Assembly: GCA_044892525.1 (NCBI GenBank)
Contig: CM097888.1
Coordinates: 91,264,001 to 91,328,000 of the forward strand
Direction of reading: 5' to 3'
Origin: Schmidtea polychroa
Taxonomy: Eukaryota
Length of the DNA stretch: 64,000 nt
Within the stretch, counting starts at the first letter, position 1. Each line of letters opens with the position of its first letter. The translations under genes and the position numbers were made by a program. The notes under the pieces were generated by a model. It saw nothing but the letters and a program-made list of their open reading frames with translations. It was not told where the DNA came from and made no database searches. This document shows, in pieces, positions 7,801 to 51,200 of this stretch.

Positions 7801-10800
7801 GCTTTTTAAAAAAATGAAACTTGCAACAAATAATTATTAAAGTGAGCAAATATAGGGGAACGTATATAAGAAATGTCAAAAAATCGATAAAATCAAACAT
7901 TGAAATACGACAAGGTCACTTTTAATTAATAAGTACAAAACGGAGGAGGAAANNNNNNNNNNNNNNNNNNNNNNNNNNNNNNNNNNNNNNNNNNNNNNNN
8001 NNNNNNNNNNNNNNNNNNNNNNNNNNNNNNNNNNNNNNNNNNNNNNNNNNNNNNNNNNNNNNNNNNNNNNNNNNNNNNNNNNNNNNNNNNNNNNNNNNNN
8101 NNNNNNNNNNNNNNNNNNNNNNNNNNNNNNNNNNNNNNNNNNNNNNNNNNNNNNNNNNNNNNNNNNNNNNNNNNNNNNNNNNNNNNNNNNNATTTCATTC
8201 TAAAACTTGAAGAGTGATAACCAGGTAAGCTAGTAAGTATCGGCTGTCAGTGATGAATTATCCGCTGGAAATGGGATTCCTGAGACAAGATATATTTAAT
8301 AAGGGAAAGAAATGTATTATTTACTCTCAGATAATTCTCCTGACGACCTAGATGTAATCAATCAAGAATTGTAGACGGTTTCCCATTCTCCCCGAGCTGT
8401 TGTTGAGCTCATTGGCAACCGGATGCCGGAAGTGTATAACAATCAAACTGAAACAAAGTAAATAAGTTTTTTTCAATGTCGAATTTCTATAAAATTTTTC
8501 TGTTATTTACTATGAGTTGAGATTGAACAATAATTTTATTATTTTTCATTGATAAATCTGGTGAAGGGCCCCCGTAAGGAGGAATGAATGGAATATTTGT
8601 ACTCACTCTGTGATTATCTATGATTTATATAATTATTTACCGGACATTTTATCAGATTATGAGAATGAAGGGGAAATTTTAGCTGTAATTTGTAATACAA
8701 TGGGAAATATTGCAATTTCCTCAATGTCAACAACACAAGGAGTCAGGGAGTTACCGACTTTATTTATTTATTTTTAAATTATCAACAAGGTTTTCTTCTA
8801 TAAATTTATGATGTCATCAGCATAAGCACAAAATAATTATAAAGAATGTCGGTATTAATGGTGCATAGATATTATGACTTACTTTTTATGAAAGGGGGAG
8901 TGGGTGGGGTAGGGGAGATACATACATGTTTACCCTATATTGGTCTAGCTGTTCTAGAATTCTTGGCTGTCATGTTAGCAATGGCTAATATACAGAAATT
9001 CTAATCCATTCTTAAGTCCAACTTATTGTTAATGGAGAAATTAATATAAGGAAGGGAGAAGGGGAGGGGAGGTGAATCTATCGGAAAAGGGGAAATTGAG
9101 AAATGTTTAGAGTAGCTGTCAATATCTTTCCAAAATCCATTCAAAATGTTTTCTCATTTGACTTTATTCCAAATTTTATTTCTAATATCTATGCTTTCAG
9201 AGTTTTATTTCTGGAGAAATAATTTTTTGTTTTAATGAATGTAAGCAAATTTCTAATCAAATGATGAGTTACAGAATAAAGAGAAAAGTTCAAGAGTGAC
9301 GTCATGATAACTCGAGGCGCAACTCTACAGAAATGATCAACATTTCTCTCTCAATTTTTTTATGAGGCGAGTGAAATTGCTGGATGATTATCGCATCCGA
9401 ATGGGGGGGGGGGGGGGGCTCGCCAATATCTGGGATAATAAGCTATTGAAATGGGGGAATATGTTTCATGAATCATTATTAATTCTTTCCTTCGTATCAC
9501 TCTCAAAATTTAATATTACCCCCATCGAATCGCTTTTGGAATTGTTTTGCCAAGGGCATTGTTGTCAATTTATTATATGATTATTATTATTACTCTCACT
9601 CTAATTATTATTATTTAATTATTAATGGAAAAAATAATTCTTAGTCGCAAGTTTGAAATTTTATTGGGTGAGAATATTTGTTTACAAAATAAACTTTGAA
9701 ATATAATTATTTATAATCAANNNNNNNNNNNNNNNNNNNNNNNNNNNNNNNNNNNNNNNNNNNNNNNNNNNNNNNNNNNNNNNNNNNNNNNNNNNNNNNN
9801 NNNNNNNNNNNNNNNNNNNNNNNNNNNNNNNNNNNNNNNNNNNNNNNNNNNNNNNNNNNNNNNNNNNNNNNNNNNNNNNNNNNNNNNNNNNNNNNNNNNN
9901 NNNNNNNNNNNNNNNNNNNNNNNNNNNNNNNNNNNNNNNNNNNNNNNNNNATTAAAGGTAAAATTTATAAATTCGTTATCAAAAGAATAAAATGATAAAA
10001 TTCATTTTAGATAAATCTTAGCAAATTTAGTACCAATTTTGTTTAAATAAAAATTATGTAAATGTGCATTTGTACAAAATGTTGTTATTGTTTGAAATTA
10101 ATCTTAGTATCAAAATTTTCATGTTTTACATTGCATTTCTCTTTAAAAAATGGTATGGCAATATCTCATATGGCCCTAAGCAAGGAGAGGGTGTAAGGGC
10201 TCCTCCCTCACCGATGCTCGCTCCATTTGTGACGTTGGAAGTATTTCCTATGTAAAATATTAATTACAAAAATTAGAAAATTCATTAATATTTTAATTTC
10301 TCTCGTATCGATTACTAAATAAATAATTCATTTTCTATAAATGTCCAAAAAATTTTCTGGAATAAATAATTATATCATTTTCTGGCAGAATCCGATTTGT
10401 TTGTTTAGTGTTTTTATTCCTATCCAATCAGACGAGATTTCTTTAAGGAATTATGAAATTCAAATTGAAATTTATTGAATAATTTAATTAATTGAAAATC
10501 AATATTTCTATAAATTAATTATTTTTTATCCAAAGTTTTCATAGATGAAAATCCAGGCAGATTCTAGATGGAAATTTTATAAATGCTCAAAATGACATTG
10601 AAAATTTCTTGATATCTGAACAATTCAATTCAATTATAATCACCATTATGTCACTGAAAGCAGTTTCGATCGAGTCAATTGATTACAAGTGATTCAGCAG
10701 CGAGTTTAATAAACTTTAATTGGTTACATCAAAATTCATTGTGACGCAACTTTCAAATAACTAAGATAGCGATCATTTTAAAATCCATTAATTTTAATCT

Positions 10801-15665: not shown

Positions 15666-16265
15666 TTACTTTCTAAAATCTTTCTGACTTTCAACTTCTC
15701 TGGTTTCAACTTCGGTCATGATGCATTTGTCTTCCTGCTTTACTAGAGCACAATAATAAAATTAAAATAAATTAATTGGTTATCACTATGTTCAATTGAC
15801 ATTAATTCCACATCATTTATACAGCTTTCATTTTTACCTGCATCTAATCGAGAGACTTTTTTAAACAGATCATTATTAATGCTTTCGGTAGAATCGCATG
15901 AAAATTTTCTTTTATTATACTTATAATTCTCGGTAACTAGAAATTCTGTTAATTTTAACTTTTCAACCAATGCTAAAGGGCACTAGAATTCACTTTCAAA
16001 TATTTTAAGTGAAATATCATCATCTTACATAATAGACATTTAATTTTTTGTCGTAAAAATTAGTTTCATTATATTTTTGAATAGCATTTTGAGCCATAGA
16101 AATAGAATCGAATACAACAACTCCTAAATGATATGATGCTTTACCAGGTGCAATGACAGAAATCTTATTTATTTTCCCAAAAGTTTTTAGATGAGTACTT
16201 AAAACTGCAGCATTTACATCAATACTAAGATTTTGAAAAACAACTATGTTTGATTCATTTAACAT
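15666..16265 (-). CDS. Small single-RRM RNA-binding protein (3 predicted exons)
   Basis: Exon 16265-16029 encodes an RRM fold (VVFQNL RNP2-like; HLGVVVF RNP1-like; AQNAIQKYNETNFYDKKLNVYY). A 46-bp GTAAGA...TAG intron (16028-15983) joins in frame to the 15982 exon (CPLALVEK...). A second ~44-bp gtgata...ctctag intron gives the final exon ...VESQKDFRK* with stop at 15666; this last part is less certain. Confidence 0.6.
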
Positions 16266-18709
16266 ATTTAAATGATAACTTTATTTAAACAAACAAAGCG
16301 GCTGACATTATTGAAAATAATAATATTTAATTTCTTCGCAAATTCGAAAATACATGAATAATATATATATTGAAATATATATTGTTTCTAATTTTAAATT
16401 GGTAACTAAAAAAATAAAAATTTTAAGAATTGATTATATTAAAAACAGAATCGAACCAGTTAAAAACTAGTTAATCGCTAATATAAATAATACAATATTA
16501 TGAAAGAAGTAAATATTTTTAAAAACATTTTAGAATTATTACTAATGAAAATATTAAAATCTGAGCGTAAACACATTAAAACTCGTTAAATCTTACTCAG
16601 GGCCCAATTAGCCACGCTTCGGACTCTGTGGCTATAAAGGGTCTCGTCAGTTAAAAAGGCATCAAATTTATGGGACAATAGATTTTTATGTTAGGAATAT
16701 AACAATTTCGATATAAAGTAAGTCAGATATATTTTTAACTATAAATAAATAAAACTAATCGTCAAACACAATTCTTATTTCTTCCAAAAATGCTTAAAGT
16801 TGGATTCTACGATATCAAACAAATTATTTCCGTGTTCTACTGAAATAATTTATCTTCTACCTCTTTTCTCTTAGCAAATTTCTCCATATATTTATATAGG
16901 TAAATTATTGTTCCAATCGATAATTTGGTGATTCCAAGTAACCTTCCAAATTCTTCGTAATTTTCAACATTTTCAAAGGCATTAATTAGTCCAATTTTGT
17001 GATTTTCTTTTTAAAAATCTATTAAATTTATTAAAAATTTAAGATAAATCTTACGAAATAATATCTTCATTATCTATACAAATCAAAGTTGAGTTTAGAA
17101 TTTTCGTCAAAACTTTTTCGGTCATTTTTTGCTAAAAATTTCTAAAAAATTCTGTAAATGATTTATTATAGTGCGTTCATTCATTACAAAAATTCTACAT
17201 ATCGAAATGTTACATGTATATTTACATGTGTTTGCGTGTGTCACTTTATTTTTCTACCACTTTCTCACTTTCTATATAAAATGCTTTAATTCATTGTAAC
17301 GATAAAAATCAACACACAGGTAAGTTTATATGTTTATATAATATACACTTATTGATATTTTTTAGATTTTAGAAGCAATTTTTCACTACAAACGAGTGAA
17401 AATACCACAAGGAACTTTGTGTGCGAATTTTACTAGTGGGTGTGTATGTCAATTTTGTCATATTGTTGTGTAAACAAAATTACTAGGGTGGTATATATAT
17501 ATATAACATTTTGACCAGTGAGATAAGGTGTATGTACGCGAATAAATCCAACATTATTTAGGGCCACGGCCGAGAAGACAGTTACACACATATAAACTCA
17601 CACGACTTTATAAATGTAAGCATAAACTCATATATCTGATCATACTTCTGCCTGCACCCTTGTAACACTGTTCAGTAAATGTATTTATCCATTAATTTGT
17701 TTATAAATACCAGTGTTATAAGGTCCCAAATATGGTTTATATAGTTGCTTTGCGCTTCTATACAGGAGTACATTATACTAGTTTTCCGATTATGACCTGT
17801 GAGGAGTACTGGCGAGGTACTCTTTGATTCCCTAGGCAAGTAAATCCAGTCGGATTTATAGCTTTGGTAGACTTATACAGTTCCCATCCTCGTTCTTATT
17901 AACGTTCCATATTTCACAGATTGGTTTTAATTGCTCAGGAATCGAGTATAAGCCTAGTTAGATATTAAAAAAAATCAAAGTTTTATTATGATATAAAAAA
18001 GGCCAGTTAAGGCATAAGGGGAGAAGTATTCGACCCTTCATTCACTAAAGCTTTCTCTTTCTTTCTTTGGGTTGGAAGGTTTGGAACGCTCGCAACAAAC
18101 TTATTATTTAACTTGCTCTGATTCTCTGTTATGGACTACATATCCTTCTCCTTTGTGAATCTTTGTGATACTGTTGGTTGCAAATCAAAACTGTAGGTTG
18201 TAAATTTACTACAAGCCTGTAGTTATATCTTTGAGAGGTAAGTTGGGTTACTTCACTAGTGCTGTTGAAGGATCTTCAGACAGACATCCCACATTACAAA
18301 TTGATCTGTTCCAATCCTGATCTGTCGTGGCCGTAGGCGTAGCATATATTAGCGATAAATATTATAATAATTATACATTTAGGAGCGTAGCATATATTCG
18401 CTATAATAGTACTTGTAGTATAATAGTTATAGGTATATTTATTATATTAATAATAGTAACAATAGTATTTATAAAATCTTACGGTTTTTGGAGTAGGGGA
18501 AGTCCATCGTCCGAGGCCGGCTGGCCGATTATATTTACTTGTTGTTCCGGATCGTGATTCAAGCGGCTCAGTTCCACTTAATACGCATATCACCAGGGGA
18601 ACTTGTTACCTAACACTACGGCAAGGCAATCTGAAACTAGCTCCTAAACTCTTATATTTTTAGTCCCTAATCCAATGGACATGGGATATGATCCAAACAT
18701 CCACCGCAT

Positions 18710-19514
18710 TTACCACATTAAAAGTGAGAGAGGAGAGACCAAAGGTTTTTGACTAAACGAATAAGAGAAGTAGAGATTGAGTTTCAGTTTTTTCCAAGCA
18801 CTATATAATCTTGTTGTCCAATTAAGTACTTTTAGAGATAATATCATCATATCATGCTTGGTTAAGTTAACCTTCATCAAGCTCTCAAAGGAGGGTTTAG
18901 CCATAAGGCCTCGCCAGTTAAGAGTGACTGCTCTGAAGTCCATTGTATCAGCTCCTTTATTTTTCATCCAATTAGATATCTCCTCTAATTTGTACTTTGT
19001 TTCTTTTATTTCATTTCGATTAATAAGTCTTTCATTGTCGTTGATGATTTGGACGTCCAAAACCATCGCATGTCGGTTTTTGAAAAGAATTAGATCAGGA
19101 TAACGGTAGCTCGCCTCACAGGGACTAATCGGTTCCACTAGTGTTGCCCACTTTTCGACTCGTACACCATGTAAGCCTGGGCATTTTTGAGCAATGTGGT
19201 TGAGACTGCAAGGGTCCTCGCAACCGATTTTACATTTGAGGAGAGAGTTGTCGGAGTGTTGCATCCTACTGTTTCTGGTGTGTGTGTGTAATAGAGGTTT
19301 CCTCTTACTTTTACCGAGGTGATGAAAGTACAGCCTGTCATCAATTTTCCTTTTGCGATAATCCATTTGTGTGCAGCGGACACTTGAATTGTTTCTATTA
19401 GCCCCTTACCATCGAGCTTCTGGTAAAGGACACGGACTGTTTTTTCGTAGAATTCCTTTTTATTGTTCACTATTAAGTCGTCTTTGACGTGGATAAGTTT
19501 ATGCCACTTTTCTA
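18710..19514 (-). mobile_element. 5'-truncated R2-clade non-LTR retrotransposon (C-terminal linker, CCHC zinc knuckle, PD-(D/E)xK restriction-like endonuclease); frameshifted
   Basis: Overlapping frames 19514-19275 and 19275-18710 join into EKWHKL...LYQKLDGKGLIET...HKWI...MTGCTFITSVKVRGNLYYTHTRNSR...CKIGCEDPCSLNHIAQKC (C-x3-C-x7-H-x4-C)...LVEP...YPDLILF...VLDVQII...KETKY...AVTLNWRG...LSLKVLNW. This is the motif order and spacing of the R2 C-terminus. No RT domain is present. The 3' UTR extent is unknown. Confidence 0.85.
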
Positions 19515-19788
19515 ATTGAAAAATTATTGATTCATGTGTCATCAGAGAATTAATCAGAGAATCATCTAATTTTTCAATTTTCAGTTATTCAATTCAATTA
19601 GTTGCCACTTTTCTATAGCATAGATTTTCTAATCCTAATTTCTCCAATTCTTTCATCACAAATTCCATTGAACCATGAATATGATAAAATTGATGTTCTT
19701 CACGTATTTTCCGGCTTTACATACTTCATGACAAAAAACTTTGCAAGAAAATACAATTTCAAATTTGTATCGTGCTGTAAAAAATAAA

Positions 19789-19860
19789 GGGCTCAGCCGG
19801 GATTTGAACCCGGGACCACTCGCACCCTAAGCGAGTATCATACCCCTAGACCACTGAGCC
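19789..19860 (-). tRNA. tRNA-Pro(AGG), leftmost copy (last in transcription direction)
   Basis: Full cloverleaf; anticodon AGG at 19828-19826; T6 terminator at 19779-19784. Confidence 0.97.
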
Positions 19861-22800
19861 AACATCATTTTTCCATAAAATTTATCCAATATTCCACCCA
19901 CATTATTATTTTCAATAAATCATCATCCATTTCATGTTGTCTCATCTCATTTTTCAATTTTCAGTTATTCAATTCAATTAGTTGCCACTTTTCTATAGCA
20001 TAGATTTTCTAATCCTAATTTCTCCAATTCTTTCATCACAAATTCCATTGAACCATGAATATGATAAAATTGATGTTCTTCACGTATTTTCCGGCTTTAC
20101 ATACTTCATGACAAAAAACTTTGCAAGAAAATACAATTTCAAATTTGTATCGTGCTGTAAAAAATAAAGGGCTCAGCCGGGATTTGAACCCGGGACCACT
20201 CGCACCCTAAGCGAGTATCATACCCCTAGACCACTGAGCCAACATCATTTTTCCATAAAATTTATCCAATATTCCACCCACATTATTATTTTCAATAAAT
20301 CATCATCCATTTCATGTTGTCTCATCTCATTTTTCAATTTTCAGTTATTCAATTCAATTAGTTGCCACTTTTCTATAGCATAGATTTTCTAATCCTAATT
20401 TCTCCAATTCTTTCATCACAAATTCCATTGAACCATGAATATGATAAAATTGATGTTCTTCACGTATTTTCCGGCTTTACATACTTCATGACAAAAAACT
20501 TTGCAAGAAAATACAATTTCAAATTTGTATCGTGCTGTAAAAAATAAAGGGCTCAGCCGGGATTTGAACCCGGGACCACTCGCACCCTAAGCGAGTATCA
20601 TACCCCTAGACCACTGAGCCAACATCATTTTTCCATAAAATTTATCCAATATTCCACCCACATTATTATTTTCAATAAATCATCATCCATTTCATGTTGT
20701 CTCATCTCATTTTTCAATTTTCAGTTATTCAATTCAATTAGTTGCCACTTTTCTATAGCATAGATTTTCTAATCCTAATTTCTCCAATTCTTTCATCACA
20801 AATTCCATTGAACCATGAATATGATAAAATTGATGTTCTTCACGTATTTTCCGGCTTTACATACTTCATGACAAAAAACTTTGCAAGAAAATACAATTTC
20901 AAATTTGTATTGTGCTGTAAAAAATAAAGGGCTCAGCCGGGATTTGAACCCGGGACCACTCGCACCCTAAGCGAGTATCATACCCCTAGACCACTGAGCC
21001 AACATCATTTTTCCATAAAATTTATCCAATATTCCACCCACATTATTATTTTCAATAAATCATCATCCATTTCATGTTGTCTCATCTCATTTTTCAATTT
21101 TCAGTTATTCAATTCAATTAGTTGCCACTTTTCTATAGCATAGATTTTCTAATCCTAATTTCTCCAATTCTTTCATCACAAATTCCATTGAACCATGAAT
21201 ATGATAAAATTGATGTTCTTCACGTATTTTCCGGCTTTACATACTTCATGACAAAAAACTTTGCAAGAAAATACAATTTCAAATTTGTATCGTGCTGTAA
21301 AAAATAAAGGGCTCAGCCGGGATTTGAACCCGGGACCACTCGCACCCTAAGCGAGTATCATACCCCTAGACCACTGAGCCAACATCATTTTTCCATAAAA
21401 TTTATCCAATATTCCACCCACATTATTATTTTCAATAAATCATCATCCATTTCATGTTGTCTCATCTCATTTTTCAATTTTCAGTTATTCAATTCAATTA
21501 GTTGCCACTTTTCTATAGCATAGATTTTCTAATCCTAATTTCTCCAATTCTTTCATCACAAATTCCATTGAACCATGAATATGATAAAATTGATGTTCTT
21601 CACGTATTTTCCGGCTTTACATACTTCATGACAAAAAACTTTGCAAGAAAATACAATTTCAAATTTGTATCGTGCTGTAAAAAATAAAGGGCTCAGCCGG
21701 GATTTGAACCCGGGACCACTCGCACCCTAAGCGAGTATCATACCCCTAGACCACTGAGCCAACATCATTTTTCCATAAAATTTATCCAATATTCCACCCA
21801 CATTATTATTTTCAATAAATCATCATCCATTTCATGTTGTCTCATCTCATTTTTCAATTTTCAGTTATTCAATTCAATTAGTTGCCACTTTTCTATAGCA
21901 TAGATTTTCTAATCCTAATTTCTCCAATTCTTTCATCACAAATTCCATTGAACCATGAATATGATAAAATTGATGTTCTTCACGTATTTTCCGGCTTTAC
22001 ATACTTCATGACAAAAAACTTTGCAAGAAAATACAATTTCAAATTTGTATCGTGCTGTAAAAAATAAAGGGCTCAGCCGGGATTTGAACCCGGGACCACT
22101 CGCACCCTAAGCGAGTATCATACCCCTAGACCACTGAGCCAACATCATTTTTCCATAAAATTTATCCAATATTCCACCCACATTATTATTTTCAATAAAT
22201 CATCATCCATTTCATGTTGTCTCATCTCATTTTTCAATTTTCAGTTATTCAATTCAATTAGTTGCCACTTTTCTATAGCATAGATTTTCTAATCCTAATT
22301 TCTCCAATTCTTTCATCACAAATTCCATTGAACCATGAATATGATAAAATTGATGTTCTTCACGTATTTTCCGGCTTTACATACTTCATGACAAAAAACT
22401 TTGCAAGAAAATACAATTTCAAATTTGTATCGTGCTGTAAAAAATAAAGGGCTCAGCCGGGATTTGAACCCGGGACCACTCGCACCCTAAGCGAGTATCA
22501 TACCCCTAGACCACTGAGCCAACATCATTTTTCCATAAAATTTATCCAATATTCCACCCACATTATTATTTTCAATAAATCATCATCCATTTCATGTTGT
22601 CTCATCTCATTTTTCAATTTTCAGTTATTCAATTCAATTAGTTGCCACTTTTCTATAGCATAGATTTTCTAATCCTAATTTCTCCAATTCTTTCATCACA
22701 AATTCCATTGAACCATGAATATGATAAAATTGATGTTCTTCACGTATTTTCCGGCTTTACATACTTCATGACAAAAAACTTTGCAAGAAAATACAATTTC

Positions 22801-25800
22801 AAATTTGTATCGTGCTGTAAAAAATAAAGGGCTCAGCCGGGATTTGAACCCGGGACCACTCGCACCCTAAGCGAGTATCATACCCCTAGACCACTGAGCC
22901 AACATCATTTTTCCATAAAATTTATCCAATATTCCACCCACATTATTATTTTCAATAAATCATCATCCATTTCATGTTGTCTCATCTCATTTTTCAATTT
23001 TCAGTTATTCAATTCAATTAGTTGCCACTTTTCTATAGCATAGATTTTCTAATCCTAATTTCTCCAATTCTTTCATCACAAATTCCATTGAACCATGAAT
23101 ATGATAAAATTGATGTTCTTCACGTATTTTCCGGCTTTACATACTTCATGACAAAAAACTTTGCAAGAAAATACAATTTCAAATTTGTATCGTGCTGTAA
23201 AAAATAAAGGGCTCAGCCGGGATTTGAACCCGGGACCACTCGCACCCTAAGCGAGTATCATACCCCTAGACCACTGAGCCAACATCATTTTTCCATAAAA
23301 TTTATCCAATATTCCACCCACATTATTATTTTCAATAAATCATCATCCATTTCATGTTGTCTCATCTCATTTTTCAATTTTCAGTTATTCAATTCAATTA
23401 GTTGCCACTTTTCTATAGCATAGATTTTCTAATCCTAATTTCTCCAATTCTTTCATCACAAATTCCATTGAACCATGAATATGATAAAATTGATGTTCTT
23501 CACGTATTTTCCGGCTTTACATACTTCATGACAAAAAACTTTGCAAGAAAATACAATTTCAAATTTGTATCGTGCTGTAAAAAATAAAGGGCTCAGCCGG
23601 GATTTGAACCCGGGACCACTCGCACCCTAAGCGAGTATCATACCCCTAGACCACTGAGCCAACATCATTTTTCCATAAAATTTATCCAATATTCCACCCA
23701 CATTATTATTTTCAATAAATCATCATCCATTTCATGTTGTCTCATCTCATTTTTCAATTTTCAGTTATTCAATTCAATTAGTTGCCACTTTTCTATAGCA
23801 TAGATTTTCTAATCCTAATTTCTCCAATTCTTTCATCACAAATTCCATTGAACCATGAATATGATAAAATTGATGTTCTTCACGTATTTTCCGGCTTTAC
23901 ATACTTCATGACAAAAAACTTTGCAAGAAAATACAATTTCAAATTTGTATCGTGCTGTAAAAAATAAAGGGCTCAGCCGGGATTTGAACCCGGGACCACT
24001 CGCACCCTAAGCGAGTATCATACCCCTAGACCACTGAGCCAACATCATTTTTCCATAAAATTTATCCAATATTCCACCCACATTATTATTTTCAATAAAT
24101 CATCATCCATTTCATGTTGTCTCATCTCATTTTTCAATTTTCAGTTATTCAATTCAATTAGTTGCCACTTTTCTATAGCATAGATTTTCTAATCCTAATT
24201 TCTCCAATTCTTTCATCACAAATTCCATTGAACCATGAATATGATAAAATTGATGTTCTTCACGTATTTTCCGGCTTTACATACTTCATGACAAAAAACT
24301 TTGCAAGAAAATACAATTTCAAATTTGTATCGTGCTGTAAAAAATAAAGGGCTCAGCCGGGATTTGAACCCGGGACCACTCGCACCCTAAGCGAGTATCA
24401 TACCCCTAGACCACTGAGCCAACATCATTTTTCCATAAAATTTATCCAATATTCCACCCACATTATTATTTTCAATAAATCATCATCCATTTCATGTTGT
24501 CTCATCTCATTTTTCAATTTTCAGTTATTCAATTCAATTAGTTGCCACTTTTCTATAGCATAGATTTTCTAATCCTAATTTCTCCAATTCTTTCATCACA
24601 AATTCCATTGAACCATGAATATGATAAAATTGATGTTCTTCACGTATTTTCCGGCTTTACATACTTCATGACAAAAAACTTTGCAAGAAAATACAATTTC
24701 AAATTTGTATCGTGCTGTAAAAAATAAAGGGCTCAGCCGGGATTTGAACCCGGGACCACTCGCACCCTAAGCGAGTATCATACCCCTAGACCACTGAGCC
24801 AACATCATTTTTCCATAAAATTTATCCAATATTCCACCCACATTATTATTTTCAATAAATCATCATCCATTTCATGTTGTCTCATCTCATTTTTCAATTT
24901 TCAGTTATTCAATTCAATTAGTTGCCACTTTTCTATAGCATAGATTTTCTAATCCTAATTTCTCCAATTCTTTCATCACAAATTCCATTGAACCATGAAT
25001 ATGATAAAATTGATGTTCTTCACGTATTTTCCGGCTTTACATACTTCATGACAAAAAACTTTGCAAGAAAATACAATTTCAAATTTGTATCGTGCTGTAA
25101 AAAATAAAGGGCTCAGCCGGGATTTGAACCCGGGACCACTCGCACCCTAAGCGAGTATCATACCCCTAGACCACTGAGCCAACATCATTTTTCCATAAAA
25201 TTTATCCAATATTCCACCCACATTATTATTTTCAATAAATCATCATCCATTTCATGTTGTCTCATCTCATTTTTCAATTTTCAGTTATTCAATTCAATTA
25301 GTTGCCACTTTTCTATAGCATAGATTTTCTAATCCTAATTTCTCCAATTCTTTCATCACAAATTCCATTGAACCATGAATATGATAAAATTGATGTTCTT
25401 CACGTATTTTCCGGCTTTACATACTTCATGACAAAAAACTTTGCAAGAAAATACAATTTCAAATTTGTATCGTGCTGTAAAAAATAAAGGGCTCAGCCGG
25501 GATTTGAACCCGGGACCACTCGCACCCTAAGCGAGTATCATACCCCTAGACCACTGAGCCAACATCATTTTTCCATAAAATTTATCCAATATTCCACCCT
25601 CATTATTATTTTCAATAAATCATCATCCATTTCATGTTGTCTCATCTCATTTTTCAATTTTCAGTTATTCAATTCAATTAGTTGCCACTTTTCTATAGCA
25701 TAGATTTTCTAATCCTAATTTCTCCAATTCTTTCATCACAAATTCCATTGAACCATGAATATGATAAAATTGATGTTCTTCACGTATTTTCCGGCTTTAC

Positions 25801-28800
25801 ATACTTCATGACAAAAAACTTTGCAAGAAAATACAATTTCAAATTTGTATCGTGCTGTAAAAAATAAAGGGCTCAGCCGGGATTTGAACCCGGGACCACT
25901 CGCACCCTAAGCGAGTATCATACCCCTAGACCACTGAGCCAACATCATTTTTCCATAAAATTTATCCAATATTCCACCCACATTATTATTTTCAATAAAT
26001 CATCATCCATTTCATGTTGTCTCATCTCATTTTTCAATTTTCAGTTATTCAATTCAATTAGTTGCCACTTTTCTATAGCATAGATTTTCTAATCCTAATT
26101 TCTCCAATTCTTTCATCACAAATTCCATTGAACCATGAATATGATAAAATTGATGTTCTTCACGTATTTTCCGGCTTTACATACTTCATGACAAAAAACT
26201 TTGCAAGAAAATACAATTTCAAATTTGTATCGTGCTGTAAAAAATAAAGGGCTCAGCCGGGATTTGAACCCGGGACCACTCGCACCCTAAGCGAGTATCA
26301 TACCCCTAGACCACTGAGCCAACATCATTTTTCCATAAAATTTATCCAATATTCCACCCTCATTATTATTTTCAATAAATCATCATCCATTTCATGTTGT
26401 CTCATCTCATTTTTCAATTTTCAGTTATTCAATTCAATTAGTTGCCACTTTTCTATAGCATAGATTTTCTAATCCTAATTTCTCCAATTCTTTCATCACA
26501 AATTCCATTGAACCATGAATATGATAAAATTGATGTTCTTCACGTATTTTCCGGCTTTACATACTTCATGACAAAAAACTTTGCAAGAAAATACAATTTC
26601 AAATTTGTATCGTGCTGTAAAAAATAAAGGGCTCAGCCGGGATTTGAACCCGGGACCACTCGCACCCTAAGCGAGTATCATACCCCTAGACCACTGAGCC
26701 AACATCATTTTTCCATAAAATTTATCCAATATTCCACCCACATTATTATTTTCAATAAATCATCATCCATTTCATGTTGTCTCATCTCATTTTTCAATTT
26801 TCAGTTATTCAATTCAATTAGTTGCCACTTTTCTATAGCATAGATTTTCTAATCCTAATTTCTCCAATTCTTTCATCACAAATTCCATTGAACCATGAAT
26901 ATGATAAAATTGATGTTCTTCACGTATTTTCCGGCTTTACATACTTCATGACAAAAAACTTTGCAAGAAAATACAATTTCAAATTTGTATCGTGCTGTAA
27001 AAAATAAAGGGCTCAGCCGGGATTTGAACCCGGGACCACTCGCACCCTAAGCGAGTATCATACCCCTAGACCACTGAGCCAACATCATTTTTCCATAAAA
27101 TTTATCCAATATTCCACCCACATTATTATTTTCAATAAATCATCATCCATTTCATGTTGTCTCATCTCATTTTTCAATTTTCAGTTATTCAATTCAATTA
27201 GTTGCCACTTTTCTATAGCATAGATTTTCTAATCCTAATTTCTCCAATTCTTTCATCACAAATTCCATTGAACCATGAATATGATAAAATTGATGTTCTT
27301 CACGTATTTTCCGGCTTTACATACTTCATGACAAAAAACTTTGCAAGAAAATACAATTTCAAATTTGTATCGTGCTGTAAAAAATAAAGGGCTCAGCCGG
27401 GATTTGAACCCGGGACCACTCGCACCCTAAGCGAGTATCATACCCCTAGACCACTGAGCCAACATCATTTTTCCATAAAATTTATCCAATATTCCACCCT
27501 CATTATTATTTTCAATAAATCATCATCCATTTCATGTTGTCTCATCTCATTTTTCAATTTTCAGTTATTCAATTCAATTAGTTGCCACTTTTCTATAGCA
27601 TAGATTTTCTAATCCTAATTTCTCCAATTCTTTCATCACAAATTCCATTGAACCATGAATATGATAAAATTGATGTTCTTCACGTATTTTCCGGCTTTAC
27701 ATACTTCATGACAAAAAACTTTGCAAGAAAATACAATTTCAAATTTGTATCGTGCTGTAAAAAATAAAGGGCTCAGCCGGGATTTGAACCCGGGACCACT
27801 CGCACCCTAAGCGAGTATCATACCCCTAGACCACTGAGCCAACATCATTTTTCCATAAAATTTATCCAATATTCCACCCACATTATTATTTTCAATAAAT
27901 CATCATCCATTTCATGTTGTCTCATCTCATTTTTCAATTTTCAGTTATTCAATTCAATTAGTTGCCACTTTTCTATAGCATAGATTTTCTAATCCTAATT
28001 TCTCCAATTCTTTCATCACAAATTCCATTGAACCATGAATATGATAAAATTGATGTTCTTCACGTATTTTCCGGCTTTACATACTTCATGACAAAAAACT
28101 TTGCAAGAAAATACAATTTCAAATTTGTATCGTGCTGTAAAAAATAAAGGGCTCAGCCGGGATTTGAACCCGGGACCACTCGCACCCTAAGCGAGTATCA
28201 TACCCCTAGACCACTGAGCCAACATCATTTTTCCATAAAATTTATCCAATATTCCACCCACATTATTATTTTCAATAAATCATCATCCATTTCATGTTGT
28301 CTCATCTCATTTTTCAATTTTCAGTTATTCAATTCAATTAGTTGCCACTTTTCTATAGCATAGATTTTCTAATCCTAATTTCTCCAATTCTTTCATCACA
28401 AATTCCATTGAACCATGAATATGATAAAATTGATGTTCTTCACGTATTTTCCGGCTTTACATACTTCATGACAAAAAACTTTGCAAGAAAATACAATTTC
28501 AAATTTGTATCGTGCTGTAAAAAATAAAGGGCTCAGCCGGGATTTGAACCCGGGACCACTCGCACCCTAAGCGAGTATCATACCCCTAGACCACTGAGCC
28601 AACATCATTTTTCCATAAAATTTATCCAATATTCCACCCACATTATTATTTTCAATAAATCATCATCCATTTCATGTTGTCTCATCTCATTTTTCAATTT
28701 TCAGTTATTCAATTCAATTAGTTGCCACTTTTCTATAGCATAGATTTTCTAATCCTAATTTCTCCAATTCTTTCATCACAAATTCCATTGAACCATGAAT

Positions 28801-30807
28801 ATGATAAAATTGATGTTCTTCACGTATTTTCCGGCTTTACATACTTCATGACAAAAAACTTTGCAAGAAAATACAATTTCAAATTTGTATCGTGCTGTAA
28901 AAAATAAAGGGCTCAGCCGGGATTTGAACCCGGGACCACTCGCACCCTAAGCGAGTATCATACCCCTAGACCACTGAGCCAACATCATTTTTCCATAAAA
29001 TTTATCCAATATTCCACCCACATTATTATTTTCAATAAATCATCATCCATTTCATGTTGTCTCATCTCATTTTTCAATTTTCAGTTATTCAATTCAATTA
29101 GTTGCCACTTTTCTATAGCATAGATTTTCTAATCCTAATTTCTCCAATTCTTTCATCACAAATTCCATTGAACCATGAATATGATAAAATTGATGTTCTT
29201 CACGTATTTTCCGGCTTTACATACTTCATGACAAAAAACTTTGCAAGAAAATACAATTTCAAATTTGTATCGTGCTGTAAAAAATAAAGGGCTCAGCCGG
29301 GATTTGAACCCGGGACCACTCGCACCCTAAGCGAGTATCATACCCCTAGACCACTGAGCCAACATCATTTTCCATAAAATTTATCCAATATTCCACCCAC
29401 ATTATTATTTTCAATAAATCATCATCCATTTCATGTTGTCTCATCTCATTTTTCAATTTTCAGTTATTCAATTCAATTAGTTGCCACTTTTCTATAGCAT
29501 AGATTTTCTAATCCTAATTTCTCCAATTCTTTCATCACAAATTCCATTGAACCATGAATATGATAAAATTGATGTTCTTCACGTATTTTCCGGCTTTACA
29601 TACTTCATGACAAAAAACTTTGCAAGAAAATACAATTTCAAATTTGTATCGTGCTGTAAAAAATAAAGGGCTCAGCCGGGATTTGAACCCGGGACCACTC
29701 GCACCCTAAGCGAGTATCATACCCCTAGACCACTGAGCCAACATCATTTTTCCATAAAATTTATCCAATATTCCACCCACATTATTATTTTCAATAAATC
29801 ATCATCCATTTCATGTTGTCTCATCTCATTTTTCAATTTTCAGTTATTCAATTCAATTAGTTGCCACTTTTCTATAGCATAGATTTTCTAATCCTAATTT
29901 CTCCAATTCTTTCATCACAAATTCCATTGAACCATGAATATGATAAAATTGATGTTCTTCACGTATTTTCCGGCTTTACATACTTCATGACAAAAAACTT
30001 TGCAAGAAAATACAATTTCAAATTTGTATCGTGCTGTAAAAAATAAAGGGCTCAGCCGGGATTTGAACCCGGGACCACTCGCACCCTAAGCGAGTATCAT
30101 ACCCCTAGACCACTGAGCCAACATCATTTTTCCATAAAATTTATCCAATATTCCACCCTCATTATTATTTTCAATAAATCATCATCCATTTCATGTTGTC
30201 TCATCTCATTTTTCAATTTTCAGTTATTCAATTCAATTAGTTGCCACTTTTCTATAGCATAGATTTTCTAATCCTAATTTCTCCAATTCTTTCATCACAA
30301 ATTCCATTGAACCATGAATATGATAAAATTGATGTTCTTCACGTATTTTCCGGCTTTACATACTTCATGACAAAAAACTTTGCAAGAAAATACAATTTCA
30401 AATTTGTATCGTGCTGTAAAAAATAAAGGGCTCAGCCGGGATTTGAACCCGGGACCACTCGCACCCTAAGCGAGTATCATACCCCTAGACCACTGAGCCA
30501 ACATCATTTTTCCATAAAATTTATCCAATATTCCACCCACATTATTATTTTCAATAAATCATCATCCATTTCATGTTGTCTCATCTCATTTTTCAATTTT
30601 CAGTTATTCAATTCAATTAGTTGCCACTTTTCTATAGCATAGATTTTCTAATCCTAATTTCTCCAATTCTTTCATCACAAATTCCATTGAACCATGAATA
30701 TGATAAAATTGATGTTCTTCACGTATTTTCCGGCTTTACATACTTCATGACAAAAAACTTTGCAAGAAAATACAATTTCAAATTTGTATCGTGCTGTAAA
30801 AAATAAA

Positions 30808-30879
30808 GGGCTCAGCCGGGATTTGAACCCGGGACCACTCGCACCCTAAGCGAGTATCATACCCCTAGACCACTGAGCC
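30808..30879 (-). tRNA. tRNA-Pro(AGG), rightmost complete copy
   Basis: Identical to the 19789-19860 copy. Confidence 0.97.
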
Positions 30880-32276
30880 AACATCATTTTTCCATAAAAT
30901 TTATCCAATATTCCACCCTCATTATTATTTTCAATAAATCATCATCCATTTCATGTTGTCTCATCTCATTTTTCAATTTTCAGTTATTCAATTCAATTAG
31001 TTGCCACTTTTCTATAGCATAGATTTTCTAATCCTAATTTCTCCAATTCTTTCATCACAAATTCCATTGAACCATGAATATGATAAAATTGATGTTCTTC
31101 ACGTATTTTCCGGCTTTACATACTTCATGACAAAAAACTTTGCAAGAAAATACAATTTCAAATTTGTATCGTGCTGTAAAAAATAAAGGNNNNNNNNNNN
31201 NNNNNNNNNNNNNNNNNNNNNNNNNNNNNNNNNNNNNNNNNNNNNNNNNNNNNNNNNNNNNNNNNNNNNNNNNNNNNNNNNNNNNNNNNNNNNNNNNNNN
31301 NNNNNNNNNNNNNNNNNNNNNNNNNNNNNNNNNNNNNNNNNNNNNNNNNNNNNNNNNNNNNNNNNNNNNNNNNNNNNNNNNNNNNNNNNNNNNNNNNNNN
31401 NNNNNNNNNNNNNNNNNNNNNNNNNNNNNTTTATTTTACTACAGGACACTATGTGGTGTATGTGATGTGAGTAATTATTATCAAATTGACTTAACAAAAT
31501 AACATCAATTACAGGAGAAAAAACGAATCTAATCATGTCAAACCTTAGGCGAATGCATTAAAACTTAAGAATAAGATCAGATCTCTGCTCAGTTTTTTAG
31601 AGATAGTTTTAAATAACGACTATAAGGAAGTAGGGTAAAGGAAACTAATGTCGAATTCCTGCTTTGAAAAATAACAATTTAAGGTGGATCAAATAAAACT
31701 TGAAAATAAGGGCGGATTTATTCTCCACTGATCGATTAATAAGGATTCTGAAAGCAGTTTATAATTTGATCAATCAATCAGTTTACAAGTTCAAAAATAT
31801 CCAGCAAAACCACCCTGCAGATTCAATAGTTAATATAGAAGATTTACATTCCTCAAGTCATGTTGAAAATGGTATCATACAATAAAGAACTCCAAAGGAT
31901 TTATTATTGGTGGCAACATCATCCTTCGAAACACAAAAAATCGATCAAAAAATTATGTAATTAATTTCCAAATTGGTAATATTTCAAACGAAAAGATCTA
32001 GATAATATAAATATATATATTTAATTTCCATTAAAACCTTTTTAACAGTTTTTTTTTTTGGACAAATCAAATATAATATCGGGATACCAAAATAGGAATG
32101 AATGAAAAAAATAAAAATTCCATCGAAACTCCCACGCATAAATGAATAAAATTAAGAAATTATTGACTAAATAAAAATCGCCACTATAATCATTACAAAT
32201 CAAATTTATATAATATTGTAAAAATCAATAAGTTGGCCATGGCTTGATGATTTTAATAGATATTTATTTTTATTTA

Positions 32277-36221: not shown

Positions 36222-37045
36222 ATACACCTAAATCCGAAATATAAAAGTTTCTATAATCTAAAAAAATCGATAAAATTATAATATAGGAACACACAAACTT
36301 ACCTGTGTGCAAATATTTGATGTTTCGAAAGTTAAAAGTTTTATTATAGGAATTGAGAAAGTAACAGAAAAATAATTTTACATACAAACACGGCACACAT
36401 AATATAAAATACACGCAAATTTAATATAGAGTTTTTTATTCCGAAAGTTAAAAGTAATTAACATATTGTTAACATATCATTATTTTTAATATATTAAAAT
36501 TCATACCGGAAAAAAATTTGGATTTTCAATCGGACAACTCTACTTTTAGTTTTCGAGAAAAGAAGGACAAAACATCGTAAGATCTATTTATTATTTATTA
36601 TTTCTTTAGATTTTCAAAGGTTTCTTTGGAAACACTTCCTTTTTGCGAAGGTGAAGATCTGACAATGTAAAGAATTTTTTCATTTAATTACAAATAATTA
36701 AAATATTTTACAGCATATCAGATATTTCTTGTCAAACGCCTTTGTGTGAAGGTAGCATTTATAATATTTAACAAGTTCCATCGACATCTTTGGATTTGCA
36801 GTAAAAAATTCGAAAATCGTAAATTTTAATAACATATTTTAAAAAAAATAATATTTTCATAGAATTTCAGAAAATGATCATTTATGTAAAATTATTTTTC
36901 TGTCACTTTCTCAATTTCTAAAATAAAACTTTTAACTTTCGGAATATTAAATTTTTGCACACAGGCAAGTTTGTGTGTTCCTATATTATAATTTTATCGA
37001 ATTTTTTAGATTATAGAAACTTTTAACTTTCGGAATTAGGTGTAT
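36222..37045. mobile_element. Foldback/MITE-like element with ~165-bp imperfect TIRs
   Basis: 36222-36385 is the reverse complement (with scattered mismatches) of 36882-37045. A second, truncated copy is at 41664-42298. Confidence 0.75.
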
Positions 37046-37570: not shown

Positions 37571-39962
37571 ATGTGTAAATCGGAGTGCTTGAAAAAGTTT
37601 TTTGACTGGTTTTTGTCTTGTAGAAACGTTTTCAAATTGTTGACGATAGTTCTAAATGTTACGATCTGCTTCGTTGGGTTTGGGATCGTCATTACGTTTG
37701 GGATCGGGATTTGCAGCGTCATGGTGTATGATTTGGTGAACAATTTCGATCAGTATCTGAATATCCGTCAATGTTATGGTCTGGTAATCATTATCGGAAT
37801 ATTTATGATAATTCTGGCGATTTATTCGCTATTTTTAGTGTCCAAAAATAATATTTGTCAGTTATTTATTTCGGTTTGTTTGAAGTTGGATTTTGAATTC
37901 AGTTTGATGAAATTTTTCTTTAGGTTATATTTTACTTCTTTATGACGATTACGCTCGGAGCGATGTTGTTTCATACTTGGTATGATAAACAGGTTTACAC
38001 GAAAAATCGGGTGGTCACAGCAATCCGTTCGTACGATTGGAAAAGTTTCAATTCTCATCATTTGGACCGTTTGCAAAATACTCTCAGTTGTTGTGGTTAT
38101 GAAAGTAATTTGTTAATATTATATAGTCTCTGACTAATTAATGTTACCTATTGGGCACATTATGGCATAATACAACTAGTTTTGTAGTGAAAAATAATTT
38201 TTCAAAACCAAAAAAAAACAGAATGAATAATTCATGTTAACCGTTAATTTTTTTCACTCTGTTGGATTCAGTAAAATTTAAACTGAATTTTGATCCACTA
38301 GTCCAGTGTTGTCCAAACTGTGTGCCGCGACGGGTGCCCAGGTGTGCCGTGAAATTCTTTTAAAAAAAGTCAAAAAAACCCTGTTTTTCCAAACAACTTA
38401 ATAAAAGGAAATTGAATTGTGGATATTTTAACAGTTATTTCAAATTTAAATGTTAATCAGTCAATTAAATCAAAGAAGCGGGAACGTATGGTTAACATTG
38501 ATCAAGAATTAAGAGTTTGTTTGTCAAAAATTCCACCTCGATTGGAACTTATTTGTTCGGAACATCAAGCACATAAATCTCATTAACTATGTTTTATGAA
38601 TTTTTCATTCACTAATTTTTCTAAATTTAAAATTTTTTACATTAAATTTATTTCAAGTAAATAAGTTTTTCATTTCTTATTAAACAATTAGTAAAGGTGC
38701 AATATAAAATTGCAAATAAAGCAAAAAAAAATTTTAGGTGTGCCGCGAAAATTTTTAATTCAGCCAAGTGTGCCGTGGCTCAAAAGGTTTGGTCTACACT
38801 GCACTAGTCAAAAAGATTTCCTCGTCATTTCATTTTTCGTTACCTTTTTATTTTGAAGTAAATTATAAATAATATATTTTGTAAAATTTTGTAAAACGAA
38901 ATCTAGTTGGTTAATAGAATGATAAAAAAATTTATTTTGAAAGTAACTTAAACCTTATATACCCAAGGTCATTTTATTAGAAATTAGAATTTTCAATTTA
39001 AACATTAATTTCTTCGAATACTAGAACTACGATTACGTCATATATGTCATTTCAAAATAGAATGAAGTTAACTGCGCTTCATAAAATTGGTTTGACCGGG
39101 AAATTTTGAATATATTCATAGAAATATAGATTTTAACGATATCTTTTATGATTCGAGGGGTATTTAAGCGTTAATATAAATGGTCTTAGGTAAATAAACG
39201 GCTCATAGAAGCATATGTGAAATGTAAAATGCACAAATCTTTTCATATGGACACTTTGAACACAAATGGTGGATTTTGGTAAATCATTAGTCACGTCTGT
39301 CTAAGGGTCAGTATTAAATTTATCATAACGTTTTATAGTAATGTTTTAAAAGGTTAACTTTTGTTATTATTCTATCGAAGGGGCCTTTTAAGGTTATTAG
39401 AAATGCAAAGATATGGAAGGATGCATATATTCATAATTTCTATTATTATATCATATTATTACGATATTATATGATATTAATAACCATTTATTATCATTCA
39501 TTTACAGGTGGAGCTGACTACCATCAAAGCAATAACTTATTCAAGAAAGATAACGTTCCACAATCTTGCTGTTTAGATAATTCCAAATCCATCATCAAAT
39601 GTAACCCAAATGTAACCCAAATAACCCTAAACAATGCTTACCCCCCAGGATGCAGTAAGCAGCTAGATTCAATTGTCTGGTACACAATTTTCGGGATTTA
39701 TATCAGCTTGATTTCCATACTATTTCTAACATTTCTGACAATGGGATTATTAGTGATCCTAGAATATTGTTCAAAAGAAACTTATGAAAACAATGAGAAA
39801 ACTGGTGACATCGATATTGAGAACAAATCCGACAATCCAGATGAGATCGAGGAAGAAGAAGAAACGAAAGAAGGCGATCTTGAAAACGAATATGTTGAAG
39901 AGAGTGAAAATGAAAAAGACGAAAATGACAATGCAAATGAAAACAATCACACAAAAGAATGA
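37571..39962 (+). CDS. Tetraspanin (3 exons, about 312 aa) with long acidic C-terminal tail
   Basis: Exons 37571-37873, 37924-38104 and 39508-39962 join in frame via GT-AG introns (phases 0 and 1). Four hydrophobic helices. The large loop carries CCG (LSCCGYES), VPQSCC, a further C and the GC motif (PPGCSKQL). Confidence 0.9.
38304..38801 (+). mobile_element. hAT Buster/Charlie-type deletion derivative in tetraspanin intron 2
   Basis: TIRs cagtgttgtccaaac / gtttggtctacactg; perfect TSD cactagtc on both sides. Internal frame KKRERMVNIDQELRVCLSKIPPRLELICSEHQAHKSH* matches the Buster transposase C-terminus. Confidence 0.92.
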
Positions 39963-40913
39963 CTGTAAAATCAATACCAATTTTCCTCAAATTATAAATT
40001 AATTTACTAAAATATTAACTATTAATTTATTTTCTTTGACAGTATTTATATTATAAATTTGAATAATTCCACAAACGGTTTCCATGACATTTCCGAATCA
40101 TTGATTAGGAAAAACAAATTATTTCATTGATTATTTATTTGGAAATCGATTGAAATTCTTGCTTCGGTTTCGTTTGATCCGATTAAATCTTCATGAACAA
40201 ATTCTCGATAGAGAGGGTTAATTATGATTGTCTGATTCCACAATTGCGGCTGCGCTCCCTCTTTTGATTGGTCATTGAAACTTTTTCTATAGTTGACCAA
40301 CTTTGGCAACTTTGATCCCATGATCGAAAATGTTGGTTATTTGAATTTTTCAGCGCTAACTCGACTTACTTATTCAACAGTAGTCAGATTATTGGATCAA
40401 AAGTCAATTTGAAAATCTTAGAGATTTGAAAATTATTTTATCTAATCTTTTGATGATAAAATATTATATTAATTAATATTATATTAATAAATTCATTATT
40501 GTCAACAAAAAGATTACTATAAGTGACTTTGATATATAACATAATTCTCGTTAGTCTTCCNNNNNNNNNNNNNNNNNNNNNNNNNNNNNNNNNNNNNNNN
40601 NNNNNNNNNNNNNNNNNNNNNNNNNNNNNNNNNNNNNNNNNNNNNNNNNNNNNNNNNNNNNNNNNNNNNNNNNNNNNNNNNNNNNNNNNNNNNNNNNNNN
40701 NNNNNNNNNNNNNNNNNNNNNNNNNNNNNNNAATCTTCAACTGAAATGTTAATGAATTTGAAATTCATTCAATTCTTAGATTTGTGTTCACTAGATTGAA
40801 CCTGTCCTTTGGGATTCGAATCAATTCGCAGACCGCTTCTGACTCTCTCTCTCAGTGAATTCCGGTTGATTGATTATCTCCGTTCAACTAGTCAATGATT
40901 GAATCACTAAGAG

Positions 40914-41663: not shown

Positions 41664-42298
41664 AATTCCTAATTATAAAAGTTTCTATAATCTAAAAAAT
41701 CGATAAAGTTATAGTATAGGAACACACAAACTTATGTGTGTGTAAAAATTTAATGTTTCAAAACTTAAAAGTTTTTATATAGAAATTGAGAAAGTGGCAG
41801 AAAAATAAATTTACATACAAACACAGCACACATAATAAAAGATACATGCAAATTTTTAGAGCGTTTTTCTCTATAAAATTTTAAGATGATTAACATATTG
41901 TTAACATATTATTTTCAAAATATTAAAAATTCATGGGAAAAGAAATTTTGATTTTGAATCGGACAACTCTAATTTGAGCTGTAGATAAAAACACGATAAA
42001 ACATCGTTTTTAAAATAATTTTAAATTTAATATTTCTTTAGATTTTTGGATATTAATCTGCAAACGCTGCCTTTTGCGAAGTTGAAGATCTGACAATGTA
42101 AGATTTATTCATTAAATTACAAATAATTAAAATATTTGACAGTATATGAGATATTTCTTGTCAAACACTGTCTTTGTGGGAAGGTAAAATTCAAAAATTG
42201 AACAAGGTCCTTCGCTATCTTTGGATTTGCAGAAAAGATTTCGAAAATCGAAAATTTTAATAATTTATTTATAAAAAATAATATTTTCATAGAATTAA
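41664..42298. repeat. Truncated second copy of the 36222-37045 element (direct orientation)
   Basis: Colinear similarity to about 36245-36865 (aaaagtttctataatctaaaaa..., ggacaactcta, gaagatctgacaatgtaa, ttggatttgcag, atattttcatagaatt). The right TIR is absent. Confidence 0.8.
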
Positions 42299-48241: not shown

Positions 48242-51200
48242 ATGACTCAGCCAATTTCTCCAAAATCTGTCAACTATTACCATGGTAGGATTACACGAGA
48301 TCAAGCTGAAGAACTTCTAATGGGTCGCGGTGGTACTGAAAGCTTATTTCTACTTCGAGAAAGTGTCAACAACAATTTCGCTGTATCAATTTGCTTTAAT
48401 AATCGCGTGCATCACTACAATATCGAGCGCCAAATTGATGGAACTTATCAAATACCAACGGGAAGACGGTTCATTGGTCCTATAGAACTTGTTAAGCACC
48501 ATTCACAACATTTGGACGGCTTTCTAACTCTAGCCCGCTATCCTCTAGAGCGATATCCCCCTGGATTATCCTACTTCGTTTTACAAGGTGTTACAGCGTC
48601 AGATTTAGAAGAAAGATTGCGATTGAAAGCAATTCAAATGGGCCTCAAAGTAAGCAGAAAATTACCCAGTATTTACTTAGTATTTACTATTATGTAATCC
48701 CAAATCAATAATTTTATGTTGATTTTAAGTTTTCGTATTTGCAAAACATTAGTATGAATATTAGGAATATTATATCACAATTATGTAATAATTACTAAAA
48801 TGGTTTTCTTATAAAGTGAATAAATTAAGTGTTTCAAAAGAATATTGATCACTCTACTGATCGGATTTAGGAAATCAATTGAATTTAGAAAATCAATATA
48901 ATTAGTAAATTAATATAAATCAATTTTCAACAGGATTGTGGTATATTATTAAATAACATTTGATCATGGTATATTAATTAATAAGTTTCCTTTAGTGTGT
49001 GATCTAAACTAATATCTTATTAAAATCATAAAAATCAGGTCATTTTGTCCATTAATTCACGTGAAAAATGAAGTAAAAGTTTTGTTTGGCTGGACAAGCT
49101 CATACAGAAACATAATAAAAACAATCTAACTTTGAATTTGTTAACTTCTTAAACCATTGAAGATTCTTGATTACTGTCAGGAATCATTTCGGTAGCACTC
49201 TGGTTGAAAATATAATTGAAAAAATAATTGAAAAGTGATAGATTATTTCATATGTAATATTAAAAAAAAATAATTAAATCGATTAAAATATTTTAAACAT
49301 TTGAAGTGCTACAAAAACATTTAAATTGCATTTTGTTGGAAAGATTATTTTCAGCAAAAACTAATTCGAAAAGACATTCATTATATATTTCATTAAATAA
49401 AATAGAATTGTCAATTATTTTTTGCCCCCCACCCCCTCTAAAACCCGGGTCATCATTTCGTATTCCCGAAATTTGTGCATAATCTATTTCACTTTCTGAA
49501 ACTTCAATTTTATCATTGTGGCACAGGTTAATGTTCAAGTCGTCGTGAAATTGTTGAATTTAGATGTTTAAATGCTTTCACCAGCCACAATACTATTTTG
49601 CGAAATCATTAAATCATGCATTAGTTTACTTGAAAAATGTGAAAAAAATAAAAAAAACCCTGAGAATCATCCTGTTTAATATTCACTTCGTTTTGTAAAC
49701 CCGATAACATNNNNNNNNNNNNNNNNNNNNNNNNNNNNNNNNNNNNNNNNNNNNNNNNNNNNNNNNNNNNNNNNNNNNNNNNNNNNNNNNNNNNNNNNNN
49801 NNNNNNNNNNNNNNNNNNNNNNNNNNNNNNNNNNNNNNTTAAAGCTTGACGAAAACTGTCAATTTTTTTGAATTCTTATGTAATTTTGAGCTTTTGGTTA
49901 AATTATATAAAAATAATAGATTCAATTATTTCTGTCTATAATTTGAAAAATAATAATCTGGATTGACAATCTAGAAAAACAATTTTTTGGTCTCCGTTTT
50001 AAAATCCTGTTCACGGACTTCTATAAACCTAGAAACTAATATCATATTAAGATGTTCCCTATTTTGGATAGTGTTATGCAGGAATATAATAAATAAGCAC
50101 GAATACAAACTCCTAGAACTTTCTTCAGAAATATCCGATTCTCCAAATTAGTAAATTAATTTCATGTAATTTATAAAGTTTAATTATTTTTGACATAAAA
50201 ATTTATTCAAATAATTTAAAATTTCTTGGAAGAGGTCGCTGAAAATTTTGATCCCAGAAAAGTGGAAATAGCCTTAAATGGGTTTGGATAACATTAATTT
50301 GGAATAGTTTTACTGATGATGATATAATATAACTTACTAGATTTCTGTTAAGGACAAGAATGCGTGGGCGTTCCTCTTAGTTCTCAGACAAGTAATATTC
50401 ATTCCAGTAAAGGAATAAAAATCGATTTCCCACAACGGATAATAATAGAGTTTTGGAATTCTATTTATAAATTAGAATTTCAGTGATATTTTAAATTTCC
50501 AATTTTCCATTTGCGTTTTACTAATTCGAATTGTTTTTTTATTTTCAATGTGTTAAATTTAAAATAGGAATAAAAGCCCACGAGATTACTAAAAACGATT
50601 TTTTAATTGTCAATAAAAATTTATTGAATAATAAATTATATATTTATCGTCAGTATTGTGACCAATCTATTTTTTAAATCTATATTATAAAGAAATAGCA
50701 TCAAAGAATTTTGTTTGGAATTGTCAACAAATGACTTTCAAAGCTACTTTTAATAGTAAATTTTCATAACTGATATTCTTAAATTCCTTGACATTTTCCG
50801 ATTGTATTGGTCATAAAGAATTGTAGATATCCCACACATTTCTAACACTGTTTAAGTTAGAATGTTCATGGGGTTCGGTTAAAAATTGTTTTTCCGTTTA
50901 AATTTTCAGTTGAAAAACTGAAATAATTGTAAAAATTTCACACTACAATTAAAAAATATATTCTTTAATAAATTAGGTATATCTTTCATGGTACTTTGTG
51001 ATCTATGAAGATTTATACATGAACTTTTAGCAATTCGAATTATTTTTATTTTGACCCATTGGAAATTATGGCACAGTTTATAATTTTATAATTAATTTAA
51101 TAAGGACGTTGATTGTTTTATTGTTTTGTAACTGCTTGGTTGATATATATATATATATATAATAAACTGCAGCGTCGTCATGACTAGACTCGATTATGTC

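Follow-up and report, generated by a model that had tools for sequence, protein, structure and literature searches.

A 5'-truncated R2-type retrotransposon remnant joined to the edge of a tRNA-Pro(AGG) tandem array in Schmidtea polychroa

The window analysed here is a 64,000-nucleotide stretch of Schmidtea polychroa contig CM097888.1, and all coordinates below refer to positions within it. A single tandem array was identified with TRF at 19562-31189 (period 380, 30.6 copies, 99% matches). The array is oriented on the minus strand and is made up of 30 complete 380-bp units and one partial unit. ARAGORN and Rfam agree on 30 identical minus-strand tRNA-Pro(AGG) genes within 19789-30879. Each unit contains a 72-nt tRNA, a T-run directly after it, and a spacer of 308 nt. 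The array is highly homogeneous: 22 of the 30 units have the same sequence, and the rest each differ by one substitution or one 1-nt indel.

The two ends of the array differ in how much can be read from them. At the far (upstream) end, a stretch of Ns (31190-31429) starts within the expected 31st tRNA-Pro unit, and the sequence beyond it is not array sequence. The far end is masked by these Ns, so the true length of the array and its upstream boundary are hidden. At the near end, the last tRNA-Pro(AGG) gene (19789-19860, minus strand; ARAGORN and Rfam) is followed by a terminal partial spacer (19562-19788, minus strand) that comprises the first 227 nt of the 308-nt spacer. Compared to the other units, this terminal spacer differs at one base, 6 nt from the junction, and is otherwise identical. 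The 30 other units of this array are all free of insertions.

Several further features were recorded in the window. The window is AT-rich, with a G+C content of ~27%, and holds seven N stretches (7953-8191, 9721-9950, 40561-40731, 49711-49838, 55229-55360 and 57765-58029, in addition to the one at the array end, 31190-31429). An RRM_1 RNA-recognition motif (E=2.8e-10) is encoded in an open frame at 16023-16265 (minus strand), which is probably a host-gene exon; it lies ~2.4 kb downstream of the retrotransposon remnant described below and on the same strand. A 151-residue ORF at 48242-48697 (plus strand) encodes an SH2 domain (E=7.5e-17), and its only named relatives are cestode, trematode and monogenean proteins of 63-70% identity, including those of Hymenolepis, Echinostoma, Dibothriocephalus and Schistosoma. 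These relatives place the host among the flatworms, and the AT-richness of the window would suggest a free-living planarian. A 163-residue ORF at 39471-39962 (plus strand) has sub-threshold matches to PFF1_TM, FAM176 and Tetraspanin and is possibly a membrane-protein exon. At 58316-59374 (minus strand) there is a pogo/Tc5-like DNA transposase remnant with HTH_Tnp_Tc5 and DDE_1 domains, divided between two adjacent ORFs and probably broken. Finally, an unclassified, MITE- or SINE-like repeat of ~150 bp occurs in four copies (17227-17374, 36249-36391, 36892-37018 and 41683-41825), in both orientations and at 73-77% identity.

Adjoining the near end of the array is a broken R2-type protein remnant (~18710-19566, minus strand) that consists of a linker, a CCHC zinc knuckle and a PD..D..K restriction-like endonuclease. 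It represents the C-terminal quarter of the element's protein, roughly the last 280-300 residues of proteins that are 1050-1280 residues long. One frame piece aligns with residues 918-1091 of the 1114 residues of the Bombyx R2 protein R2Bm (8gh6_A; E=1.5e-6) and also matches two further solved R2 proteins in the PDB. An exhaustive protein search against 1.84 billion representatives returned 466 matches at E<=1e-3, of which 60 were at E<=1e-10; the best was P0001, with an E-value of 5.4e-19 and 39% identity. Across the remnant and seven C-terminal relatives, the alignment shows complete conservation of all four CCHC residues and of the endonuclease residues P-D, D, K and Y.

The second, upstream frame piece, searched separately, had no match in the PDB. 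It is colinear and gapless with the region directly N-terminal to the knuckle in many relatives that the first piece also matches, with E-values down to 4e-12 (against 155 fetched proteins). Pfam gave no useful match for either frame piece, and a word-index protein search with a 218-aa piece found nothing, partly owing to the length window of that search. Given the silence of Pfam, the identification of the remnant rests on PDB and library homology. A preliminary description of this DNA had proposed an R2-type C-terminal ORF. Homology bears out the CCHC knuckle and the endonuclease, but not a single ORF, as the remnant reads in two frames separated by one frameshift and also has one in-frame deletion, which amounts to 16 codons relative to all seven aligned relatives. 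Neither frame piece contains an internal stop. The remnant is a dead copy, yet little eroded.

When 41 full-length relatives were compared to the window by tblastn, matches were confined to 18782-19584, and no reverse-transcriptase or N-terminal R2 homology was present anywhere in the 64 kb. A missing reverse-transcriptase part is expected where a copy is 5'-truncated. The same truncation has removed the N-terminal zinc finger(s) and Myb DNA-binding domain, the part of an R2 protein that would carry target specificity. We also considered whether the array might have split a complete R2 element; this was rejected, as neither reverse-transcriptase nor other R2 homology occurs past the far end of the array or elsewhere in the window. 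No second copy of the R2 fragment was found within the window.

The comparator relatives place the remnant more closely. The best match (P0001) clusters with a full-length protein (P0151), which aligns with R2Bm at E=9e-148. In the contig that encodes P0151 (L001), the element is flanked on its 5' side by co-oriented 28S sequence that stops at LSU model position 2337. For two other relatives, P0013 (contig L002) and P0014 (contigs L006 and L007), the canonical 28S downstream sequence lies 269-296 nt past the stop codons. The 20-mer used to recognise this downstream sequence was taken from S1 Fig of PMC5035012. L006 (ENA ERZ27289751 k119_131542) spans a whole rDNA unit with the element within the 28S gene. 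On L007 there is a 5'-truncated relative whose extent is close to that of the window remnant (a 339-residue ORF and a 296-nt UTR) and which has 28S flanks on both sides that meet at a common model position of ~2331-2337. The relatives that could be placed by their context are thus canonical 28S-site R2s, and this supports an R2-group affinity for the window remnant, as judged against R2Bm and these relatives. The cluster names of the 20 top matches give no taxonomic signal; almost all are unnamed, and the only names are an ostracod, a butterfly and a wasp. The metagenome contigs L006 and L007, in which a 5'-truncated R2 copy sits at the canonical 28S site of a complete eukaryotic rDNA unit, served as the model of a targeted truncated copy.

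The junction between array and element falls at 19561-19568. Array homology ends at 19562, and R2 coding homology begins within a few codons of that position, in agreement with the earlier claim that the truncated 5' end abuts the terminal array unit. The claim that the element lies on the same strand as the tRNAs also holds, both being on the minus strand. The distance from the last tRNA to the element had been put at about 275 bp and is revised here to ~225-245 bp. The last six bases of the array, AGATGA on the minus strand, can be assigned to either array or element and form a 6-nt microhomology, and the sole mismatch of the terminal unit directly precedes them. Microhomology joins are typical for the 5' junctions of truncated non-LTR insertions. 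The junction has the look of a microhomology-mediated join, and any end-joining deletion would look alike. A tRNA-derived SINE with an R2 tail was also considered and rejected, as a T-run terminator stands directly after each tRNA and the R2 part begins only after 227 nt of spacer.

Because the array consists of 11.6 kb of near-identical units and has its other end at an N stretch, this is a hard region to assemble, and the array and the R2 fragment might have been brought together by a chimeric join at a repeat without being truly adjacent. However, the sequence across 19500-19650 is continuous, the 6-nt overlap at the junction is too short for an overlap mis-join, and the window contains no second copy of the fragment that could have misled an assembler. 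We therefore consider an assembly artefact very improbable.

A template switch is another way in which such a junction could have formed. Here, the reverse transcriptase would have jumped from a truncated R2 RNA to a read-through transcript of the array, and one or a few units, retro-copied to a new locus upstream of the R2 tail, would later have been amplified. Template jumping by the R2 reverse transcriptase is established, as are chimeric retrocopies of small RNAs and LINEs, and the locus has the corresponding arrangement: array and element share one orientation, array sequence is restricted to the 5' side, and a short microhomology marks the switch point. However, the junction is 227 nt past the tRNA and its T-run terminator, which calls for an unusual read-through transcript, and the copied sequence would then need to have been amplified to at least 30 units. 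Furthermore, the second junction that this model predicts, at the far end of the array, is masked by Ns. Among the explanations weighed here, we give this one the slimmest chance.

The 3' side of the element is less sharply defined. From the lengths of the UTRs in three relatives (269-296 nt), the 3' end might be guessed to lie near 18410-18440, the boundary being undefined in a single copy; the presumed 3' UTR would accordingly span 18410-18709 (minus strand), with a lower bound guessed from those same lengths. An Rfam E-value scan gave no match to an R2 3'-UTR family, and RNA folding of the presumed 3' UTR provided no boundary signal (z = -0.6). It should also be noted that a very AT-rich segment at 18337-18477, at the expected R2 3' end, contains two imperfect direct repeats ~48 bp apart; these could be 3' UTR, insertion target or unrelated sequence.

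We looked for sequence of the array, and of the canonical R2 target, around the element. No array homology was detected in 17000-19561 by blastn (word 11), and the earlier statement that no array sequence follows the 3' end of the element stands and is central to the reading of the locus. A 45-nt segment across the junction (19600-19556), made up of 39 nt from the array end and 6 nt from the element, has no k-mer of 8 nt or more in common with 17500-18712. Likewise, the 81 nt of expected unit continuation share no k-mer of 10 nt or more with the same interval. These results indicate that there is no target-site duplication and that the array does not resume downstream, while a very short array-derived stretch may lie at the true, unmapped 3' junction. 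With respect to rDNA, Rfam matched no rRNA in 16500-20000, even at E<=10, nor anywhere else in the window, and the canonical 28S downstream 20-mer was absent from the window with up to 3 mismatches allowed. The reported lack of 28S sequence nearby is thereby confirmed.

R2-type elements insert by target-primed reverse transcription, in which the endonuclease nick sets a precise 3' junction. Their 5' junctions are variable and often accompanied by deletions. As the 3' junction marks the target of an R2 element and array sequence occurs only on the 5' side, the array appears to be a bystander and not a recognised target. From this one copy we conclude, with a probability of roughly 0.7, that what remains here of a divergent R2-group non-LTR retrotransposon is the 3' part of a single copy, dead and truncated at its 5' end, and that its adjacency to the tRNA-Pro array is incidental and not targeted. 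The truncated relative on L007, which has its 28S target on both sides, is consistent with this conclusion. One point against it is that the truncation falls exactly at the array edge and on the tRNA strand; a targeted 5' junction would look alike.

An incidental insertion could have proceeded in a few steps. The endonuclease would have nicked unique DNA just past the array, and reverse transcription would have stopped early. The microhomology would then have served to join the cDNA end to the last array unit, where this was broken, with loss of the intervening DNA. Alternatively, a later deletion may have fused an older R2 fragment to the array, an outcome inseparable from direct insertion. 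The data also fit the suggestion in the preliminary description of an insertion that set the boundary of the array, and such an insertion is indistinguishable from a later deletion.

The preliminary description had also raised an R2 lineage that uses tRNA arrays as a safe haven, and this idea finds no support here: array sequence on the 3' side, a target-site duplication and other occupied units are all lacking, and the copy is dead. In this explanation, an undescribed and very divergent R2 lineage would have switched from 28S rDNA to the spacer of the tRNA-Pro array, and the downstream part of the array would have been lost afterwards. The 5' end of the element is indeed joined directly to an array unit on the tRNA strand, multicopy RNA-gene arrays are typical safe havens, and the behaviour of a family with no more than 39% identity to any library protein is unpredictable. 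However, it is the 3' side, the invariant junction of R2-type elements, that is without array sequence. Furthermore, 0 of the 30 other units are occupied, there is no target-site duplication, an extra deletion event is required, and a 2026 survey of 330 R2 sequences mentions tRNA 0 times. We consider targeting of the array unlikely in the extreme, though marginally less so than an assembly artefact.

Two known systems offer partial precedents for targeting. Dewa, a Tx1-group element with an AP-type endonuclease, is found in many copies at one spacer site, with target sequence on both sides. Neither this type of endonuclease nor the multi-copy, two-sided target applies to the window remnant. 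The likeness is that both are non-LTR elements beside a tRNA tandem array, in the case of Dewa reportedly the spacer of a tRNA-Leu array in zebrafish (PMC3706591). Within the R2 lineage itself, R8 and R9 are precedents for a change of target (PMC5035012). However, the targets they moved to lie in rRNA genes as well, and many copies with both flanks support them, which is not so for the window remnant.

No other copies of the family were found: there was no exact-product record, the library proteins reached at most 39% identity, and the metagenome contigs yielded no close relative. The targeting idea is therefore disfavoured and not refuted. A parallel is provided by R2NS-1_SMed of a planarian and R2NS-1_CSi of a liver fluke, two flatworm R2 families that have unrelated flanks and no target specificity and that, like the window remnant, are R2-group elements outside rDNA (PMC5035012). 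For R2NS-1_SMed, S1 Fig of PMC5035012 lists the flanks, and its likeness to the window remnant is one of host phylum and genomic location. A flatworm host, together with the R2NS precedent in flatworms, counts against an array-targeting lineage. Most likely, the element belongs to or resembles these non-target-specific flatworm families.

Compared to canonical R2 elements (R2Bm, PDB 8gh6/8ibw, and the elements on L001, L002 and L006/L007), the window remnant has the same C-terminal order of linker, CCHC knuckle and endonuclease. Truncated 5' ends are also common among canonical copies, the one on L007 being similar in size. The remnant differs from them in that it lies outside 28S, is broken, is at most 39% identical to any relative and has target-like sequence on one side only.

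If the array had been targeted, this would be the first known case of an R2 with a restriction-like endonuclease leaving rDNA for a Pol III gene array. It would also mean that the DNA-recognition module of R2 can acquire such a new target in nature, which would be relevant to the evolution of target sites in site-specific retrotransposons. Most likely, however, the locus is a further decayed R2-like copy outside rDNA in a flatworm, for which there is precedent. What it offers is then modest: it puts on record a very divergent R2-group sequence, with no more than 39% identity among 1.84 billion representatives, and a clean microhomology 5' junction at the edge of a homogeneous tRNA array.
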